From the NCBI GenBank assembly GCA_000388065.2, contig KB932221.1: a DNA stretch of 11,216 nt, one strand, 5' to 3'. Both the position numbers and the translations under genes were made by a program. Shown piece by piece: positions 709 to 11,216 of this stretch; the stretch's first letter is position 1; the number at the start of each line of letters is the position of its first letter. The stretch comes from Fonticula alba ATCC 38817. Taxonomy: Eukaryota; Protista; Nucleariida. The notes under the pieces were generated by a model, which was not told where the DNA came from, ran no database searches, and saw only the letters and a program-made list of their open reading frames with translations.

Positions 709-715
709 TATAAAA
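709..715 (+). promoter_or_regulatory. TATA box (TATAAAA), probable core promoter of the 11-exon gene; start of transcription expected near 740
   Basis: Perfect TATAAAA in GC-rich flanks, with no ATG between it and the ATG at 877. Confidence 0.55.
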
Positions 716-876
716 GAGGGCCGGCGGGGGAGGCTCTCGAGCAGCGCGAGTGGTGGCCAACGACTCAAGGACATTGAGTGCCTCCTCCCCTGTGCGTATT
801 TTTTGCCCCGAAACTGGCGCATCCTTAGCGACTCTGCGTCCCGTAACCGGACATCCTGCTGTGGCTCGATTGCGCG

Positions 877-1115
877 ATGGAGACTAGCGTGTCGATTTCC
901 CCGCCTTCACGGGTGCTCCGCCTCGGCGAGGTGGAGTTGCACATTGGCCCGAAGCCCTGGCCGGCCGGGCCGCCCCCTCTCGCCGAGGAGGAGGGTGCCT
1001 GGCCGGGACTGCTGCTCGTCGGGGCGCGGCAATTTGCCCGATTGGCCGAGGCCGCGGGCGCGACGCCGAGCGCTTTTCTCTTCCTGGAGGCCGCGGGGCT
1101 GATGCTCCGGGTGCG
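877..1115 (+). CDS. Exon 1 (coding part): METSVSISPP...GLMLRV(R), first half of N-domain repeat 1
   Basis: Lies in ORF 877..1146 and ends at phase-2 donor CG|GTGCGT (1116). Confidence 0.8.
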
Positions 1116-4100
1116 GTGCGTTGTTCGGGCGTGCTTGACCGAGTGAAGGAGGTGAAAAGGAGCGAATGGCCGGGGTGGGGGGGGGGGGCCATGTCGGCAG
1201 GGGAGTGAGCCTGACCCTCGGGCTACTGCCGTGTTTCGCTGCCGCCCCACTGGCCATCGGTTACGTGGATCCTGTGGGGGGCCATGGATGTGGTCGACCC
1301 AGGCCGGACCCACGCGCCGGCCCCCTTGGTCTGCTGTCGGAGGAGTGGGTGCGGCGCCTTTTCCCCCCCGGTCGAGAAGGGATGCTGGAAGTGCGGCACC
1401 TCCAGCCACCGGAATTGGAGGCCGCCTGCTTCGCAGTCCGGTTGGCGGTCGGGGACCAGTCGGTGTCGGCCGGCTCGCAGACCGTTCCCTTTGCATCGGT
1501 CGAGGCCGCGCTCATGGAGGCAGTGGTCGCGCGAGGGAGCCTGCTCCGTGCATCGGATGTACGTTGCCCTCGAGGGAGGGCGGTCGGGGGAGGCAGAAGC
1601 TGTGGAGGGATGTCGCCATGAGCAACGCCCGAAATTGACATGGCCCCCCGGTGGCAGACCTTCCGGTTGGTCATCGACTTGATCGAGCTGGATGTGGCAG
1701 TGACGGAGTTGCGCAGGATTTCTCCTCCGCGGGCAGGGGTCTCCTGCGGCTGGGTGGGCCCTGGGTCCCGGGTTCTGCTGGCCGCCAAGGCCGATGGACG
1801 GGTGGACTTGCTGAATGCGCCGGTCATGGTGACACTATCGGCCCCGGAAGGAGCGCGCCCCGAGAGTGAACTCCACATCCTCTACCCGGACTATCAGCCG
1901 GCCCACAACCTGGATGTGCTGCTGGCATCGGCCGAAGGCCCGGCAGGGCGCGCGCTCCTTGCCTGGCAAGCGGCCTCCGACCTTTCCGGGCTCTATGTGC
2001 GGCATGGGGATCGCGTCTTCCAGGTTCGGTACGGGTTCCTCCTGTCGAGGCATCGTCGCTCCGCCGAGCTCGGGTGTGTACTGATCTGAGCCGCGGCCCA
2101 ACTGGCCCCCCGATGGGGGAGCGGGCGCAGCCTTTGCCCGGGTGCTGGACCCGGAGGAATGGGGCTGCGGGGAGGGCGGCGTCTGCTGGCGTCCATGGCT
2201 CGCCGGGCGCATGGTCGGCCGGTGTCGCTGGCCGTGTGCCGCCCCCCGGCCCCGCTGGCTGTCGTCTGGCTGGAGACCTCTCGGGACATCGAGCAAGTGG
2301 ACCGGAGCTGGCTCCTGGCCGAGCTGGCTGGGGCGCCCCTGCGCGTGGGCCAAGTACGTGCCTGGCGCCATCGTGCCTGTCCGGCGCATGTGTTCCTGAC
2401 ATGAGACATCCCCCTCGGCCGGGAAGATCATTCGGTTTACATCGCCGGCATACTGTGTGCGAGTGGCCCGGCTCATGGACCGGGACTTTGGTGATGTGCC
2501 TTACGGGACGGCCAGCGATGGGCCGTCCGATGATCGGACTCTCGTTTATGTGCAGACGCCGCGCGGTCGGCCGGAGGCCATGCCCCGGCTGGCGTCCATT
2601 ACATCGGGCCCGGGGGAGGAGGCTGTGATGCTGCTGGAACCGGTGGCCGGCCAGGTGGACCATCCGCCGGGAACTCTCTTGGTGTCTGAGCCGGCCTTCC
2701 GGCGCATGGCCGGGCTGGTGGGCCAGGACTCGGGGCCCGTGCGTCTCCAATACCGAGGCATGGTGTTCGATGTGCGGTGCGTGAACATGTCTCGGCATCA
2801 GACGAGTGGGTCCGAGGGGCTTTCGGCACGGCCGCCGGGTTTTCTGACCCAAATGGACTCGTGGCCCAGACCGAGCAAAGGGGTCGCCCGCTTTGCCGTG
2901 GAGACCCACCCGCGGGAATTCATGCTCATGGATGAGCCGGGTCCGTTCACTTTGAGTCCTGCGCCGTGGGTGCCGGTGGCGGCCTGCATGGTGGTGGCCT
3001 TTGCCGCGGCGCCAGGCGAGGTGGCCGGCGCTGGCCGGCCCTCGGGGGACCTTTTGAAGGGCGACTTCCTGGCCACCCACGCCGGGGGGACCATGCAACT
3101 GGGCCGGGTGCGTCGAGGGGGGGGGGGGGGGGCCAGCCGCGTAGTCTGCGTATGTCCGCCTTGTTTTTCCCTCTTGCACTGACCCTGGCCATGGGGCATG
3201 CCGTGTCAGACGCTGCCCTTCGTCTCGGGTGGTCGCCGGATGGTGGCCACTGTGCATCGGCTGACGTGGCCCGGCACGCCGGACACCGAACGACCGGTCG
3301 GCTTGCTGGGCGTGGGGCATCCGCCGCGCGGCGTTCGGGCCAGGCCCCCCTCAGGGCTCGAGACAGACATCGACATGGCGGTGCCGGGGGACCCTGCTCC
3401 GGCAGGGGGCGCTGGCATGCCGGCTCCGGGGGAGGGAGTGTGTGCCACTCGGGGCCAGGTGCGGACCGATACCGAGGTCGAGGTACTTCTCGAGAGGCAG
3501 TCCAGCGACATGGCGGATGGGGCATTTTGCACGCCGCCAGACCATGGCCCTGGGTCTGGGGAAGGCCGTGGGAAGAGTCCAGGCAGGCCACCGGGCCAGC
3601 CCGGCCGCGGCTGGCTACTTGTGTCTCGTCCCGGTCGGGAGTCCGATGCACTGGGAGCCTGTTTGGAAGTGCGGGCCAGTCCGTTGGAAAGATTCCCCCC
3701 TGGCCGGGCGGCCGTCAGTCCGGAGTTCTACCTGCGCATGCGGGAGTGGCTGGCCGATGGGGCCGATGCCTTTCTCCAGTGGGGCGACCATGTCCTGCTG
3801 GTCTAGTACGTGGTGCTCTTTTTTTGGTCCCGTTACCGCGGGTGGCTTGCAGGCGCGCTAACTGGCCCTCGCCGGGGGCTGCCCAGCCCGGATCCCGATC
3901 CCCGCTCGCCGCTGACCGAGGGGCAGATTACCATCAGTCGGTGGGACTTTGGGCGGATGTTTGCGCTGGGGCCGGTGTTTTTGGCCCAGGCGACTGCCCG
4001 GCCTCGGCAGGTGAGCCAGATTGAGTTGCATCTGCTGTCGCCGGTGCCGGGCTGGGAGGGCGAGGAAATCGACCATTCGAATCTGGCACGGGCCTTTTTG

Positions 4101-5966
4101 GACCAACTGGATGGCTCCGTGCTGACGGTGGGCCAGGTGCGTCGGTCACACGGGCTCTCGGCAGGGGTGACACCCTGATACTGATGTATATTGCCATGCC
4201 CGGCGGTGGGGCGGCCGGCCGGGGCATCGCGCGTACGTGCTCGCAGGAGGTGGAGCTGGCGGTGTCGCAGGGGCGCCTGGCGTCGCGGGTAGCCCGACTG
4301 GTGGACGTCCAGCTGCGGCCGATGCCTTGCGGGCTCTTGAGCCACGGCGAGACCTGGGCCTCGGTGTATGTGAGCACGGTGAGGCACGATGTGCGGGTGG
4401 GAAACCCGCCAGCCTCGATCCTGCTGCGGCTGCCCATGCTGACCGAGGCCGTTCGGCTGCCGGTGGCGACCAATGTCAGTCCCATTCACACGGGCCCCGA
4501 TGGGCTCCAGGTGACGGGGGACACCTTGGCCGCCCTGCAGGGCCACTTCCTGGACCGGGACAGTCCGCTTTTTGTCGACAAAACGCTCGAGATTACGTGC
4601 GTTCAGGAGCAGGCCGGATCGTGGTCACGCCGTCACTTTTCCTTTGTTCCTGGACTCGGCCTGGGGGGATGATCGGGAGGCTGGAGGATTAACCGGACAC
4701 ACTGGCACTTGGCCTGGTGGTGGCAATGACACACAGGGCCCTGTCCAATCCCCGGCTTGGGCTCCGGGCCAACCACATCCTCGTCGGAGTGAATGTGCTG
4801 CGTATGATAAACGGGACCCTGCGGCTGACCTGCATCGAGCCGCCCGAGCTGCTTACCCTTTCATGCGAGGTCACCTGGACTGGCTGGTTCGGGGTGCCGG
4901 TGCCGGAGCAGAGCATGCTGGAGGAGTTGCTCCTTCAGGCGGTATCCGGCTCGAATGTCCTTCGAGCACAGCAGGTGCGCATTCGGACGTGCAAAGGGAG
5001 GGGGGGGGATCTGGCCGGGCGTCCTCCTGGTGACAGGGTGGGTGGCGGGGACGGTCGACGCGGAAATGCCTGACTTCACGCCTTTTCCCCGGCTCTCACT
5101 TTGCTCCGGCGGGGACCCGGGGGATGGGTGGGGGGCTCCCCCTGCAGGTGTATCCCGGGCCGCCGGCATCATCGGAGCTGCTGTTCACCATGTCTCGGTT
5201 GGTGGGCGACGACCTGGCAGAGTGGAACCTGGGAACCATGGTCCCGGGGATGACCCGGATTACGTTCACGTCGCTGGAGAATTCCGGGATGGATCTGACA
5301 CCGCGACCGCTGGAGATGTCGCTGCTGTGCGCCATCGGTCGCATGCCGCACCTGCGTGTGGAATTTACCCGGACACCGACGCCGCTGTACCCGGGGATTC
5401 TCCTGCCTCGGGAGGTGCTGCAGTTGGCACGCGAATCGGTGGCCGCCGGCTCGGCCGGAATGATGGATCCCCTGCCGGAGGTCCTATTCTTCGTGTGCCG
5501 AGGACGGGTGTTTGTGGCGCGGCCCTCGGACACGCATGACACCCCGGGGGTGGTGCGCGTTTGCCGGGACTTCGAGAGCTTCCTCGCCCGGGACTCGGGG
5601 GGCATCCTGCACCTGCCGTTTCTCTTCTTCCCCACGCATCTCAGCATCGTCCATATGAGGGTGGCTTTGCTGGGGGCCGGGGGGACGACGGGCGGCTCGG
5701 ACCCGGACGATGAGCCGGTCGACGTCGGCCTGGCCCTGCGCGACCTGAGGAGGGCCATGGAGGCGGCCTTCCCGGACAGCAGCATGGCCGTGTTGGAGCG
5801 GCGCTCCTTTGCCTGTCCCCGGGGGGTGATTGTCTTCACGCCGGAGCTGCTTTGGGACATCCACGGGCAGGTGGTGCCATGTGGGATATTTTGCCCCGGC
5901 GATACGCGAGTGCACTTCCGCCTGAAGGGCATCATCCTGTGTCCGGGCGGGAAGCCGGCCGAATGA
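877..5966 (+). CDS. Predicted 11-exon gene, 1309 aa, six tandem NSF/Sec18(CDC48)-type N-terminal domains, no AAA ATPase domain. join(877..1115,1303..1558,1658..2028,2131..2353,2427..2776,2870..3107,3210..3805,3887..4136,4247..4596,4737..4974,5148..5966)
   Basis: Start ATG in gcgATGg context, 162 nt after TATAAAA. The ten donors are GTGCGT x5, GTACGT x3, GTACGG and GTGCGC. Acceptors are CAG x9 and AAG x1, with branch-like CTGAC/CTAAC/TTAAC/TTGAC/CTGAT upstream. Exon lengths 239,256,371,223,350,238,596,250,350,238,819 sum to 3930 nt, all in frame and stop-free. Spliced repeat 4 reads GQITISRWDFGRMFALGPVFL...QVSQIELHLL...EIDHSNLARAFLDQLDGSVLTVGQ|EVELAV; NSF as I recall it reads [23 protein letters not shown]...CIGTMTIEIDF...[49 protein letters not shown] compares with NSF [21 protein letters not shown]. 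Confidence 0.85.
1303..1558 (+). CDS. Exon 2: PDPRAGPLGL...SLLRASD
   Basis: Acceptor CAG ending 1302 is the first AG after CCTGAC (A1214). Phase-0 donor GAT|GTACGT at 1559. An alternative in-frame CAG ends at 1200 but gives a poorer junction alignment with the other repeats. Confidence 0.75.
1658..2028 (+). CDS. Exon 3: TFRLVIDL...GDRVFQV(R)
   Basis: TTGAC branch-like motif (A1638) with CAG ending 1657; phase-2 donor CG|GTACGG at 2029. Confidence 0.8.
2131..2353 (+). CDS. Exon 4: LCPGAGPGGMGLR...GAPLRVGQ
   Basis: CAG ending 2130 (a GAG ending 2121 is also in frame); phase-0 donor CAA|GTACGT at 2354. Confidence 0.75.
2427..2776 (+). CDS. Exon 5: IIRFTSPAYCVRVARL...GMVFDV(R)
   Basis: CCTGAC (A2399) with AAG ending 2426 (a GAG ending 2405 is also in frame but only 6 nt from the branch A). 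Phase-2 donor CG|GTGCGT at 2777. Length 350 nt, the same as exon 9. Confidence 0.78.
2870..3107 (+). CDS. Exon 6: PSKGVARF...GGTMQLGR
   Basis: TTCTGAC (A2847) with first-AG CAG ending 2869; phase-0 donor CGG|GTGCGT at 3108. Length 238 nt, the same as exon 10. Confidence 0.8.
3117..3132. repeat. G16 homopolymer in intron 6
   Basis: Read directly. Similar runs: G12 at 1177-1188 (intron 1) and G9 at 5000-5008 (intron 10). Confidence 0.9.
3210..3805 (+). CDS. Exon 7: TLPFVSGG...WGDHVLLV(Y), includes Gly/Pro-rich expansions
   Basis: CACTGAC (A3182) with first-AG CAG ending 3209. The phase-2 donor TA|GTACGT at 3806 converts the apparent TAG stop into TAC (Tyr). Confidence 0.8.
3887..4136 (+). CDS. 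Exon 8: PDPDPRSPLTEGQITIS...DGSVLTVGQ
   Basis: GCTAAC (A3861) with first-AG CAG ending 3886; phase-0 donor CAG|GTGCGT at 4137. This is the most NSF-like segment. Confidence 0.85.
4247..4596 (+). CDS. Exon 9: EVELAVSQGRLASRVARL...DKTLEI(T)
   Basis: TACTGAT (A4184) with first-AG CAG ending 4246; phase-2 donor AC|GTGCGT at 4597. Confidence 0.82.
4737..4974 (+). CDS. Exon 10: ALSNPRLGLR...SNVLRAQQ
   Basis: ATTAAC (A4692) with first-AG CAG ending 4736; phase-0 donor CAG|GTGCGC at 4975. Confidence 0.82.
5148..5966 (+). CDS. Exon 11: [18 protein letters not shown]...PGGKPAE*, tail of repeat 5 plus the whole, intronless repeat 6
   Basis: CCTGAC (A5073), a pyrimidine tract, then first-AG CAG ending 5147; TGA at 5964-5966. 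Confidence 0.85.
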   Translation: [272 protein letters not shown]

Positions 5967-6319
5967 GGCCCTGGAACTAAACAAGTTACCCCGATCGTCA
6001 AACAACACGGGCGCCCTGCCTGTGGGCATGCGTCTTCCCCGGGACCGTGGAGGAACGCCGGCACCAACGGCGGTCCAAGCTGTTTGTCCGAGGGGCGGGG
6101 CGCAGATATGGTGAGAGGGAGTCCTTTTGTTTCTTCGCAGCGTGGGGCCTTTGTTCGTTTGGCACTTTCGGTCCTCCTCTGCGTGCGCTGGTGTCTCTTG
6201 ACGACTGTCAATGCATGGCGAAAAGAGGGGCCAGGACGAATGGAAGAGGTCCAGCGCAGGGGGGGTGGGGGGCGCATCGAAGCCGCGTAGGGGTGGATCG
6301 AGATGAAATGCAGATCACC

Positions 6320-6345
6320 GAGAGAGGGAGAGAGAGAAAGAAAGG
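6320..6345. repeat. Pure polypurine (GA-rich) tract
   Basis: gagagagggagagagagaaagaaagg, read directly. Confidence 0.7.
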
Positions 6346-6806
6346 CACGGAGGAAAAGGCAATCTTCCCGAGGGGTGCAGCATCGAACCACAGCCTAAGG
6401 CCGCTGTGCACAAAGAGGCAATGTCGGACATGCGCTCTTTTTGTAGGCATCTCAGTGGCAAACGCACTGTGGCGCCCGTCTCCTAGCAGGATATACAAGC
6501 CAAGTTGTTGACCCCTTCGCGACATGCGGCCGGGATGGCGGCGGCGGCGGCGATGACCAAGCATCCATCACTAGCGGGCGGCAGGAGGTGGCTCTGTGCT
6601 GAGGCTGGGGATTCCAGAGGGAGAGGCCCTTCTGATGGAGCAACAGATGCGGGGCTTGGGGAAGAGGCCGCGAAATGCGAGGGCCGGGCAGGGAGGCGCG
6701 GCCGCTGAGCAGGCCGGACGCGAGTAGGATTCCGTTGGCACTTTAGAACCCCAGCACCCACCCAGAGGACAGTGTCCTTCCCGGGGCACTGGGCGGCAAA
6801 GGGCGG

Positions 6807-6812
6807 AATAAA
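6807..6812 (+). promoter_or_regulatory. Candidate polyadenylation signal AATAAA
   Basis: The AATAAA I found downstream of the stop codon, about 840 nt away. A variant ACTAAA lies at 5976-5981. Whether this organism uses the hexamer is unknown. Confidence 0.25.
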
Positions 6813-6941
6813 ATAAGGTCGACAATATAGAGAGCAGCAGAAGCCGAGGCATGGATGAGCGTTCGGGCCGGCCACGCTGTGGTCGGGTGTGTTTTTGGAT
6901 ACCGTCTCCCCGTGTGCCACGCGGTTGGTACGTGGAATGGG

Positions 6942-7045
6942 TTTTTTTTTTTTTCGTCGCTCCCGCCGAGCGCCTTCTTTTCGAGTATTATCCTGGCGTC
7001 GCCCACCATACCTCGGGGGTGCTAGTGAGGGGGGGGGGGGGGGGG
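6942..7045. repeat. T13 (6942-6954) and G17 (7029-7045) homopolymers
   Basis: Read directly from the sequence. Confidence 0.85.
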
Positions 7046-10000
7046 CGCCTTGCCGGGATCCGGCCTCTTCCTCCCTTGGAGCCTGCATCCCTGAGGCCCT
7101 CGGGGCTGGAACTCCTCGCCGCGTCCCGAGTTCAGCCACTGTACCTCGTGCCTTTGCCGGGGCTTCGGGAGGTAGGTCACACTCCCGGTGGCAGGCAGCG
7201 CAGCACCTCAACGGCGGTGCCGGGGCTCGTGGCACACGCCCTCCCCCCTGCCCTCGGCCGCACTGGGGCCGTAGATTTGCTCGCGGCCGGCCTTTGTTGC
7301 CTCTGCATTGGTCTATTCCTTGAAGGGCAGTGACGTGCGGTGCATCCGCCCTTCTCCGGAAGGGAGAGGGGCACTCTTTCTCCCGGAGACGCAGTCTTCC
7401 TCCAATATCGCGTAGCGGGCTTGGGATGGATGCTAACATGCGTATGTATCAGTCAAGATGCTGACTGGCCTTGGATCGGTGGGCTCGACTACGCGGACTG
7501 GATGGGGCAACTACAGGCAGTGTCTGGTCCCCGGTGACAAGGCTTTCCTTTTTGCTTGAGATGCCGGTCCCTAGCAGGGCGTCTATGTGTGCCATGTGTG
7601 GGCAGGGCGGCGTTGATCGTGAAGATCTGGGTGGCACTTTGTGTGGGGTACCAGGGGCTTCGGCGACAGCCGTGGAGGGATGCTGCGTACGCCGGGGCGA
7701 GCAAAGTTGCCCCGCTCAAGGAGGAGCGTGTCGAGCGCGTGCGGGACCTCCGAGCCAAGCAACATCACCGGCTGCAAGGGTGCCCCTGCCGCCCGGCGCT
7801 CGTGGATCGGTCGGCGCTGCGAAACAGATGCAAGCCCTATGGCCCCTCACTCGCCTATGGGATTGGGTCGGACATACATTCCCACGTCTACAAAGGCGCC
7901 GGAGTGATGGTGAGGCCTCCTGGTTCCCAGGCGAAGCGGGGGCACATTCGACCACCCGGCAAGAGAGTTGTTGGTTGTCCTGCCGGCGAGGCCTTTCCTC
8001 TGCATGGGAGGCCGCCAATGCCCCACACTAAGTTGAGATGTCCAGCTGTCGTTTGAGGTCGTTGGCCGTAGTGTACAGTGGACGGACCGGGGCCTCGCTG
8101 TGGTATGTCGTCGACATGATGTCCGGTTGGTGAGCATGTCATTGCCCCAATCGGAAAGCATCTAGGGCCTTTGTCTTGGCATCTGCCTGGGTGGCCATTT
8201 GGACAAGTTGCTCATCCTGTATCTGGACCTCTCTCGAGTCAGCCTCAGCTCGAGTAGGGGTCGTGGAGTGCTCAGTCAGCTTTGCTCGGGGAACTCACGC
8301 CATGAGTCCTCCGGGGAGGGGGACATGTTCTATCGGTAGGCTAAGCGGCTGTGGAAAATAGTTCAGTGAGGGGCGTCCTCGGCCGCCACTGTCTCTCTTC
8401 CCGGGGAATTGCGATCGAGGTGACTACTGCTAGGCCAGCCCTACAGCGTGCAAGAAATACAGGCTGCTGCATGGCGAGATTTGCTATTAAGTAGAGGTAG
8501 ATATTGAGCTTATGGTTATGGTTGGGGATTGACAAGAGGACAGCATGTACATGGGGATAGGAATACCGGCTTAGGATGCGTCTGTGGCGTGGGGCCTCCT
8601 ATGCCTGGCTTGCTGAGGTGTCTAGGTCATTGCTCCGAAGGAATGTGGCCGAGGTGCTGTGTCGTTTGGTGGGGAGTGTGGGTGCAGCTTAAAAAAAAGC
8701 ATGGGTGATGCAGGAAGCGTGCCCTTCGGGCGCACTTTCAGTCAGTAAGTGAGGGCACCGCATGTCGGGGTCGTACAGCAGGAGCTCCCCTTTCGAGGAC
8801 AATCCGCCGCGAAATGTGGGGCTGAGGTCACTGCGAGCAACTTTTCAATGCCGTGGTCACAGTGCGCCCCATTTTGGCAGATAGGTCCAGATTGGCCCTC
8901 TCTCTATAAGTCGGGCACTTCGGCAGATTCCACACACAAGGAACGGATTTGAGCGACCCTGCCCGGGCATGGGAGAGCCATTTTCGTAAGGGAGACAGCC
9001 AAGATGCGGAAGTCGAGGCATGATCGAGAAGGCGTAGCTCGAGCATCTCTATGTTGTAAAGGCGTATGCAAGCTGGATTTTCGCCTGGGGTCGACGTATC
9101 GCTTTCTGACCTGTGTGTAGCATGAACTAGGGCCTACTCGGGGATTAATTGATGACAATGGACACGGAAGGGGGCCGAAGTCTCGTGCTGTGACAGGGCG
9201 ACGCTTGGGCAGCAGAAAAATGAGTTTGCTGTAGAAGATCGGCGATTGCCGGCAGTAGGCTGACCGAAGGGGTTGGGTTGAAATGCGGGACATGCTGTCA
9301 CTGGCGGAATGAAGAGGGCGCTTGGCATTATTCAGGGCGCGCCGATGAGTCAATGTCTCAGCCCTGCTGGGGCATGGTTTGATCCTACATTCCGCGACCC
9401 CCGAATATCGAAGGGTCTTGGTAAAGAGGTCACCCTCTGATGGGCGATCATCGGGATGCTATGTGGCAAGCCATTCCTGCAATGGCCGGAGTGTCTCTGC
9501 TCGAGGTGGGACTCGGGGTGAGGGGGCGGGCGGGACGCGCCGAAGGCATGGGTGGTCCCTGGAGGCGGGAGTCAGTGTATGATGACGAGCAATGTCAAGG
9601 GCGCGGCCGCTCGAGCGGAAGATGCCTCGCCGCCACTCAAGTTAAGCGGACTGGGCGCTAATCTCGCGCGGCTGGCTCCATGCTGTTGGCGTAGCATGCG
9701 TGGAGAACCGGGTGGAGGTACATCATGGTAATCCGGGATGCTGTTTACGCCACAGTGCTCTGTGAAGCGGTGCTCAACGCTGGGACACATGTGCAAGTCC
9801 CATTGGGGGGTACATTTCGCTAGGGCGTCACGAGGCATGGCTCTTCGTTTATGTCGACCATCGCCAGCGGGGAGGTGTTGTCACAGCCACGTCTGGGTGA
9901 GGCTGGGCGCGGCAGGGCGTAGAGCTATGCCAGTGAGACACTGGGAGCGGCATGTCGGGGTAGTTGGCAACATGAAGACCATGGGGAGCGATCTCCTGCC

Positions 10001-11216
10001 CGGGCGGAGGGCATCGGGAAGCTGTCGCTGGAGCAGGTTTTGTTGCCAGGCTCGCCGGTGCAAGGATCCACAGGAGCTAGGTCCGGTTGGGAGGTGGCCG
10101 AAGCTTGCGATGCGGGATGTGCCGAGCCGACACAAGTGTTGGCAGAACTACGTCTTTGGTAAGCAGGAAGACCACCAGGCGTGCATACTCCTGCTGTGGC
10201 TGAGTGCCGCGTGGGGGGATTCGTCGAGGGAGCTGGCTGGCCAGGCGCATCTGCGGCGGATGGCTCATGAGGTCGGAGGCATCGGCGATCGCAGCAAACA
10301 TCGGCCGGTGCCTGGATAAGGTGTCACCCAGGCATCGCCGGATCTGTCAGGAGTGCGCCGTCGTCGTGTGGGCGCTCGAGGCGGAGGCGGGGGCGGGGGA
10401 GGGGGCCGATGCTCGGGCGTGGTATTGGGTGTCAATCGACTGGGGCCTCTCGGGAAGTGTCGGATGACGGGCGACACACGGGCCAGAATAGCAGGACCGG
10501 GGAGGGAGAGAAATTGTGTGCAAAATGTCGTGCATGTGTTTGATGAGCGAATGTAGGTACAGGGATGGGTGAATGGGTGTGACCTTGGGGAGGGAGTGCG
10601 GCGGAAGCAGTGAGAGGCAGTGCCCGGGGTCGAGGAAGGCGCGAGGGTAAGGTGTGAAGTAGGGACACGTATGCCAGCGGGCATGTCCGCGTGACCAGTT
10701 TGTGGAATCCGGGGCCACCGCGGTAGTAGGCGGGCTAGGAGGATGTGGCAAGTGGGAGGGGGCAGGCGGGCGCGGAGAGGGCGGGCATGGGGATCCTAGG
10801 CGGGGTGAAAAGTGCGCGGAGGGGTGGCTGTCGGGGCTTTGAAGTGGCGGTAGGAGGGGCCTCAGCGAGCGTGCGTGTGTATCAGAATCAATTGGGGTCC
10901 AGTAGAACGAGGATAATAGAGAAATTGGAGTAAAAAGCCGCGGCGGGGATATCGCCAAAATCCCGAACTCTGAGCGAGCGAATGCGCCAGAGCGGCGCCG
11001 AACGCTGTTGGAAAAACACATATTCTCAGAACATCTCCCTTCAATTATCAGAATGCGTAATCCGCGTGACGCGAAAAAGGGAATTAAAAGTGGAAAAAAG
11101 TGCGGAGAGGCGAATGTCGCCGGAAGGAGGCAAAAAGAGGTGAGAAAAAGACTCCTGGCCGCTTGGGCCACATCGGCGGTTGACGAAGTGGCCTTCCGCG
11201 ACGTCACTCGGCTGAC

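Follow-up and report, generated by a model that had tools for sequence, protein, structure and literature searches.

An expressed eleven-exon gene of Fonticula alba encodes a predicted chain of six NSF-type N-domains and no ATPase

The N-domain of NSF, Cdc48/p97 and their relatives otherwise occurs once or twice ahead of an ATPase ring, while UFD1 and DEPDC5 carry one copy on its own. A locus that would encode a whole array of such domains with no motor behind it raises the question of what kind of protein this is and how it came about. The locus lies at 877-5966 on the plus strand of an 11,216-nt stretch of contig KB932221.1 (Fonticula alba ATCC 38817, assembly GCA_000388065.2), hereafter the window, for which an initial annotation made from the letters alone had proposed a hidden gene of this type. 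On the evidence presented below we consider it likely that this is an expressed 11-exon gene for a soluble protein of 1309 amino acids with six NSF-type N-domains and no AAA+ module, that it belongs to a family of F. alba, and that its product is probably a multivalent scaffold.

Ten short open reading frames had been joined in the initial annotation through ten GT(A/G)CG...(C/A)AG introns into one frame of 1309 residues, and mechanical splicing at the same coordinates agrees: the eleven exons yield a coding sequence of 3930 nt with no internal stop codon. The donor reads GT[AG]CG in all ten introns and the acceptor CAG in nine and AAG in one; intron lengths range from 73 to 187 nt, and the phases alternate (2, 0, 2, 0) along the gene. 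Retention of eight of the ten introns would halt translation within 33 codons; for intron 7 the stop arises right at the exon junction, and intron 5 is the sole intron without a stop in the stretch examined. Codon periodicity is strong in the coding sequence (GC content of 0.80 at third versus 0.52 at second codon positions), follows the gene and is weak or absent over most of both flanks, the window as a whole having the composition of GC-rich eukaryotic DNA (62-72% GC). Prediction from the sequence of the product gives neither a signal peptide nor a hydrophobic or membrane segment.

The transcript data, which consist of the assembled contigs of four RNA runs from 2012, confirm that 877-5966 is a real, expressed and spliced gene. 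The RNA contigs skip 187, 99, 102, 73, 93, 102, 81, 110, 140 and 173 nt, exactly the ten predicted introns, and cross all ten junctions without a single mismatch. Exons 7, 8, 9 and 11 are joined in one 2468-nt contig, which by its numbering also contains exon 10 and part of exon 6. Contig depth starts in the 700-886 bin, and the contigs stop at ~5997, ~30 nt past the TGA, with no onward splice joint from exon 11, be it to AAA exons or elsewhere, in any of the four runs. Two irregularities were seen: all four runs hold a contig that matches from 1168, inside intron 1, with 255 unrelated letters before it, and the contigs break at a poly-G run ending at 3132 in intron 6. Both probably stem from homopolymers or chimeras in the assembly and not from alternative exons.

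The gene contains no ATPase, as had been claimed. The coding sequence ends at 5966 and no D1/D2 AAA+ module follows; the Walker A motif (G..G.GK[ST]) is absent from all six frames of the 11.2-kb window, the 5.2 kb beyond the stop codon (5967-11216) show almost no codon periodicity, and the transcripts end right after the stop. No Pfam family was found in the downstream open reading frames.

What the chain contains in place of a motor can be addressed by comparing its parts, for which six homologous units had been proposed. We built leave-one-position-out profiles, that is, profiles made only from units at other positions, and scored them against 1000 shuffles: each of the six units of the window is recognised with 13-40 bits, a score reached by 0-1 of the 1000 shuffles. 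An alignment of 28 units, those of paralogs included, is coherent, and hhalign connects positions 4 and 5 with 96%, 3 and 6 with 92%, 2 and 4 with 90%, 5 and 6 with 86%, and 3 and 4 with 73%, unit 1 being weakly linked. Within the window itself, pairwise phmmer between the units gave no matches, Smith-Waterman z exceeds 3 for two unit pairs only (2-4 and 4-6), and Tandem Repeats Finder reported no repeats. Judged by these profiles, the six units are homologous but very diverged. A Gly/Pro-rich linker of ~90 amino acids (~3330-3599), longer than in the paralogs, separates units 3 and 4.

Being free of introns, unit 6 could be modelled directly on the sequence of the window. The AlphaFold2 (AF2) model based on alignment A1 reaches a predicted local distance difference test score (pLDDT) of 88.9 and a predicted template modelling score (pTM) of 0.84, and the five models agree (87.7-88.9). 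In a Foldseek search against the PDB the top 39 rows are all the NSF N-domain (6e-9), followed by p97, PEX1-N and Sec18; against AFDB Swiss-Prot, the matches are NSF, PEX1, SEC18, UFD1 and CDC48, always at their N-termini. VIA-align yields Z-scores of 9.3-9.8 for NSF-N, Sec18-N and the N-terminal domain of DEPDC5, and an exhaustive, Foldseek-independent VIA scan of 48,161 representative PDB chains ranks NSF-N (9.6) ahead of the DEPDC5 N-terminal domain (9.5), Sec18-N (9.3), PEX1-N (7.8), UFD1 (7.6), Cdc48-N (7.5) and Pex6 N1 (7.3). No other chain among these 48,161 spans both subdomains at comparable Z; the lower matches cover one subdomain only, namely designed and VAT double-psi barrels or, for the second subdomain, PH1500-N. 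The AFDB models of two paralogs superpose on the unit 6 model with template modelling (TM) scores of 0.79 and 0.60, and shape searches of the ESM Atlas and of AFDB clusters agree with an N-domain fold. An ESM Atlas feature search with exon 11 alone returned nothing useful, and one with the whole paralog P0005 led to CDC48_2, CDC48_N, PEX-1N and UFD1 clusters. The full-length model of this paralog is of medium quality (pLDDT 65, pTM 0.36): its unit 4 matches NSF-N with a Z of 14.3 and a root-mean-square deviation (rmsd) of 3.3 Å over 170 of ~199 residues, NSF occupying the 17 top rows, and p97-N with a Z of 12.9, and the order of strands and helices in this pLDDT-65 model is the same in every unit. 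Structure prediction and comparison, the check that the initial annotation had proposed, thus assign unit 6 and the paralog's unit 4 to the N-domain fold with NSF-N in first place. These models support for unit 6 the N-domain fold of NSF/Sec18/Cdc48/PEX1/UFD1 with its two subdomains, first a double-psi beta-barrel and then an alpha/beta roll, and suggest NSF-N as the nearest solved structure, with p97, PEX1 and the N-terminal domain of DEPDC5 behind it by a modest margin.

Several observations weigh against reading the whole chain in this way. Pfam searches at E<=10, with CDC48_N and CDC48_2 included, gave no match for 10 of the 11 exons or for seven paralogs; phmmer of exon 11 against PDB sequences found no match either, and of two profiles searched against the same sequences, A1 matched nothing and A5 gave one stray match with an E of 1.5. 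Since no sequence or profile match to CDC48_N, CDC48_2, NSF or PDB chains exists, the fold assignment rests on predicted structures. The proposal that the units stand closest to the NSF/Sec18 N-domain consequently holds in structural terms, NSF-N being first in Foldseek and in the VIA scan, but not by sequence: the identity of the units to known N-domains amounts to 7-15% (10-14% to NSF-N), and the two peptides quoted in its favour are present at residues 825-841 and 1075-1086, but their alignment to NSF is not a statistical match. Moreover, the TM-scores of unit 6 to known N-domains are only 0.43-0.54 with an rmsd of 5-7 Å, direct fold matches are limited to unit 6 and to unit 4 of paralog P0005, and in the model of the latter the barrel subdomain of both unit 2 and unit 5 lies below pLDDT 50. 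Units 1, 2, 3 and 5 would be N-domains on the strength of the leave-one-out profiles, hhalign and the secondary-structure order in the medium-confidence paralog model. Finally, the scaffold mechanism considered below, most likely as it may be, is taken over entirely from the role of the N-domain elsewhere.

The gene does not stand alone. With exon 11 as query, a complete HMMER search through 1.84 billion proteins returned seven real matches, all of them hypothetical proteins of Fonticula alba with 28-44% identity, and detected no family member outside this species; an eighth match, a sushi-repeat protein, was judged spurious. The paralogs (H696_05766, H696_04153, H696_06122, H696_06118, H696_05299, H696_06124, H696_05952 and others) form a six-unit family: they are colinear with the window protein across all six units at 35-45% identity, share its intron sites and, wherever complete, have six units. 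Their most conserved stretches include the first psi-loop and helix of four barrels, plus core strands. Besides the window gene there are ~9 paralogous loci, none of which overlaps the window, and three scaffolds carry tandem pairs; to judge from the sequence searches, the family would be restricted to F. alba with ~10 six-unit members. As none of the matches comes near 100% identity, the window gene itself seems to be missing from public protein sets. Two single six-unit paralogs are each annotated as two genes (L002 18049-23145, 481 + 409 residues, and L006 7252-12248, 630 + 568 residues), and other public models miss the first one or two units; together with the seeming absence of the window gene, these split and truncated models mean that the family is under-annotated and that errors in its gene models are systematic. 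In the flanks of loci L004 and L006, paralogs adjoin very large genes with furin-like/VSP and growth-factor-receptor repeats, and one lies beside a protein-kinase gene, which suggests surroundings rich in lineage-specific families.

The exon-intron structure bears on how the array arose. Each unit has two intron sites: a phase-2 site that follows the beta3-beta4 hairpin in the barrel, and a phase-0 site that follows the 'VGQ' strand in the second subdomain. Introns occupy the same sites, within 0-1 residue, in six annotated paralogs. The blocks between the phase-0 introns comprise whole codons (594, 588, 846 and 588 nt), exons 5 and 9 both measure 350 nt, and exons 6 and 10 both 238 nt; such two-exon blocks could duplicate by intronic recombination without a break of the frame. 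The most divergent paralog, H696_05952 (L005 10001-14619), has two extra introns within unit 6, at the homologous sites. From their retention it follows that the ancestral array would have had twelve introns, the last two of which were lost in the lineage of the window gene, and that it was an intron-bearing module that was amplified. In a tree of the units, those of the same position cluster together whichever gene they come from (5 changes, as few as can occur, versus a shuffled mean of 20.6), which places the six-unit array before the radiation of the paralogs. Duplication of a three-unit block (1-2-3 to 4-5-6) was also considered and is unsupported by hhalign and the tree: the pair 3-6 is strong, 2-5 and 1-4 are weak, and neither gives a clear order of relationship between the positions. 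The coordinates of exons and units are collected in Table 1.

Table 1. Features of the window, with the evidence on which each is based (coordinates in window numbering; units are assigned by prediction).
Feature	Position	Strand	Evidence and remarks
Candidate TATA box TATAAAAG	709..716	+	read from sequence; ~160 nt upstream of start codon
Exon 1 (ATG at 877; first part of unit 1 barrel subdomain)	877..1115	+	RNA junction 1114/1302, skips 187
Exon 2	1303..1558	+	spliced frame and RNA junctions (skips 187 and 99)
Exon 3 (end of unit 1, start of unit 2)	1658..2028	+	spliced frame and RNA junctions
Exon 4	2131..2353	+	spliced frame and RNA junctions
Exon 5 (end of unit 2, start of unit 3; AAG acceptor)	2427..2776	+	spliced frame and RNA junctions
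Exon 6	2870..3107	+	spliced frame and RNA junctions
Exon 7 (end of unit 3, Gly/Pro-rich linker, start of unit 4)	3210..3805	+	spliced frame and RNA junctions
Exon 8 (ends ...LTVGQ)	3887..4136	+	spliced frame and RNA junctions
Exon 9 (end of unit 4, start of unit 5)	4247..4596	+	spliced frame and RNA junctions
Exon 10	4737..4974	+	spliced frame and RNA junctions
Exon 11 (end of unit 5 and all of unit 6, which has no introns; TGA 5964-5966)	5148..5966	+	spliced frame and RNA contigs to 5997
Predicted N-domain unit 1 (aa 1-219; spans introns 1-2)	877..1819	+	profile 26.2 bits, 0/1000 shuffles; hhalign weak
Predicted N-domain unit 2 (aa 220-413)	1820..2576	+	profile 13.0 bits, 1/1000 shuffles; hhalign to unit 4 90%
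Predicted N-domain unit 3 with linker (aa 414-689)	2577..3599	+	profile 21.1 bits, 0/1000 shuffles; hhalign to unit 6 92%
Predicted N-domain unit 4 (aa 690-896)	3600..4411	+	profile 40.4 bits; equivalent in paralog P0005 matches NSF-N, Z 14.3
Predicted N-domain unit 5 (aa 897-1090)	4412..5306	+	profile 20.0 bits; hhalign to unit 4 96%
Predicted N-domain unit 6 (aa 1091-1309)	5307..5963	+	modelled directly; AF2 pLDDT 88.9, pTM 0.84

In the remainder of the window, a short (CA/CG)n microsatellite occupies 561-580. The downstream region 5967-11216 is G-rich on the plus strand, with a GC skew of up to +0.44 near 10501-11000; it contains 13 consecutive T near 6944-6956 and ~19 consecutive G near 7027-7045. 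The weak periodicity seen at ~7560-8280 and 9960-10400 did not resolve into a gene. Searches of the window for tRNA genes and against Rfam produced no matches.

How the predicted array relates to known systems is best seen by going through the proteins that share the fold. The N-domain of NSF/Sec18 (PDB 1QCS, 1QDN, 1CR5) has two subdomains in the same order as the F. alba units and is the best structural match of unit 6 and of the paralog's unit 4; NSF, however, carries one N-domain followed by the AAA+ modules D1 and D2 and acts as a hexamer, whereas the F. alba protein would have six on one chain, no ATPase and no profile match. In p97/VCP/Cdc48 and archaeal VAT-N, a double-psi barrel is likewise combined with a beta-clam (Z up to 12.9 for the paralog's unit 4), and in p97 the cleft between the N subdomains binds adaptors, but a single N-domain precedes two AAA+ rings, and Pfam CDC48_N and CDC48_2 miss the F. 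alba units. PEX1 and PEX6, with N1 and N2, are the only proteins described as having several such N-domains in a row on one chain (PMC5070193, PMC10777020); their two domains are always followed by a D1-D2 ATPase, unlike the six in F. alba (Z 7.8 for PEX1-N, 7.3 for Pex6 N1). The UT3 domain of UFD1 (Z 7.6) resembles the F. alba protein in having the fold without an ATPase on the chain, yet UFD1 has one copy and a UT6 tail with SHP motifs that docks on Npl4 and p97, whereas in the F. alba protein the last strand of unit 6 is followed by nine residues and no such tail. The N-terminal domain of DEPDC5/Iml1 in the GATOR1/SEA complex (Z 9.5-9.8) also lacks an ATPase, but is present as one copy fused to unrelated domains and not as an array. 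The fold is further predicted in ATPase-less proteins of other protists (AFDB clusters A0A2R5G7C3, A0A2P6UZH8, A0A0L0DKY1 and A0A7J6S8R5), which again have a single N-domain, fused to cytochrome b5, CAP-Gly or cyclic-nucleotide-binding (cNMP) domains; Cyt-b5 clusters were also among the N-domain-fold matches of the ESM Atlas shape search, and the Atlas holds stand-alone N-domain-like proteins of 150-230 residues from giant viruses and archaea. A pure sixfold array is, according to the initial annotation, not known from any described protein; a search of a library of papers likewise found none describing an array of such N-domains, nor was one found under any Pfam family. The models support a new architecture of a known domain: six N-domains in a chain, with no motor.

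Such an architecture invites a mechanistic proposal. In NSF, p97 and PEX1/6 the N-domain is the module that recruits adaptors or substrates (PMC5070193, PMC4490564), and the UT3 domain of UFD1 binds and even unfolds ubiquitin without ATP (bioRxiv 10.64898/2026.03.07.710261). By analogy, six N-domains on one chain, laid out as three units, a flexible, disordered Gly/Pro-rich linker and three further units, would most likely form a scaffold or adaptor that binds an oligomeric or repeated ligand multivalently and without ATP. The array probably arose by amplification of an intron-containing module with two conserved intron sites per unit, and the paralogs may then have diversified in their ligands.

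The strongest rival reading concerns descent. The units might be N-domain-like in the sense of the wider Cdc48 family and not derived from NSF, having come from Cdc48/p97, PEX1/6, UFD1 or a stand-alone N-domain protein with NSF ranking first by geometric chance. We hold this to be plausible, if clearly short of an even chance: the DEPDC5 domain scores as high as NSF (Z 9.5-9.8), p97-N comes near it on the paralog's unit 4 (12.9 versus 14.3), identity to all candidates is 7-15%, and the ESM features lead to CDC48_2, CDC48_N, PEX-1N and UFD1 and not to NSF in particular. Against chance speaks the consistency with which NSF-N comes first: in Foldseek against the PDB (39 top rows) and AFDB Swiss-Prot, in the VIA scan and for unit 4 (17 top rows). 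That the fold call is a modelling artefact concealing another true fold, or the locus a transcribed pseudogene, we regard as very improbable. The absence of Pfam matches would fit, as would a borderline match of the position-4 profile A4 to the ethanolamine ammonia-lyase light chain in the PDB (E 0.01, 18.8 bits), which we took as a chance match because it occurs at a single position and because the alpha/beta fold of that protein is incompatible with the confident beta-rich model. An artefact is, however, hard to reconcile with five agreeing AF2 models (87.7-88.9), with matching AFDB models of paralogs (TM 0.79 and 0.60) and with the language-model features of a paralog, a separate method that points to the same family; a pseudogene is at odds with a frame intact over ten spliced junctions, with codon periodicity and with conserved paralogs.

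The remaining alternatives concern function. As N-domains normally work atop a hexameric ring, and as the unit count, constant in all complete paralogs, equals the number of ring subunits, the chain could serve a AAA+ ATPase encoded elsewhere as a detachable subunit that recruits substrates or adaptors, the two together making up a split Cdc48-family machine; this is unlikely, given that no ATPase gene is present in the window or among the genes called beside the fetched paralogs and that no docking element is recognisable. Less probable still is a chain folded back on itself as a pseudo-hexameric ring or spire of six N-domains, which would mimic the N-tier of NSF or p97 and capture SNAP/SNARE or UBX-/ubiquitin-type partners without ATP. 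Were it true, a family of decoys or holdases that handle AAA+ substrates without ATP would have evolved in Fonticula; the inter-unit geometry, ring or rod, is not readable from the full-length P0005 model (pTM 0.36). In the narrower form of this idea, to which we give a slim chance, the chain would mimic the N-tier of the NSF hexamer specifically and bind alpha-SNAP/SNARE without ATP as a decoy or regulator of SNARE recycling. Six units with NSF-N as the nearest structure, and the four to six N-domains that surround the SNAPs in the 20S complex (PMC6160233), would suit it; an identity to NSF-N of only 10-14%, a long linker dividing the array three plus three and an arrangement of units that is not confidently predicted would not, and the existence of ~10 diverged paralogs is easier to explain by a variety of ligands than by one conserved partner. 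No observation speaks specifically for mimicry of a hexamer or decoying of SNAPs, and both are improbable.

We return to the multivalent scaffold as the preferred reading of the F. alba family. The gene structure reads as a clean record of how an array grows: copies of a phase-compatible, intron-bearing module multiplied, drifted apart until their sequences no longer recognise one another, and in part lost the introns at the 3' end. The predicted architecture also offers a natural setting in which to ask what N-domains can do in the absence of ATP, and whether the avidity of six clefts on one chain can replace the assembly of a hexamer.

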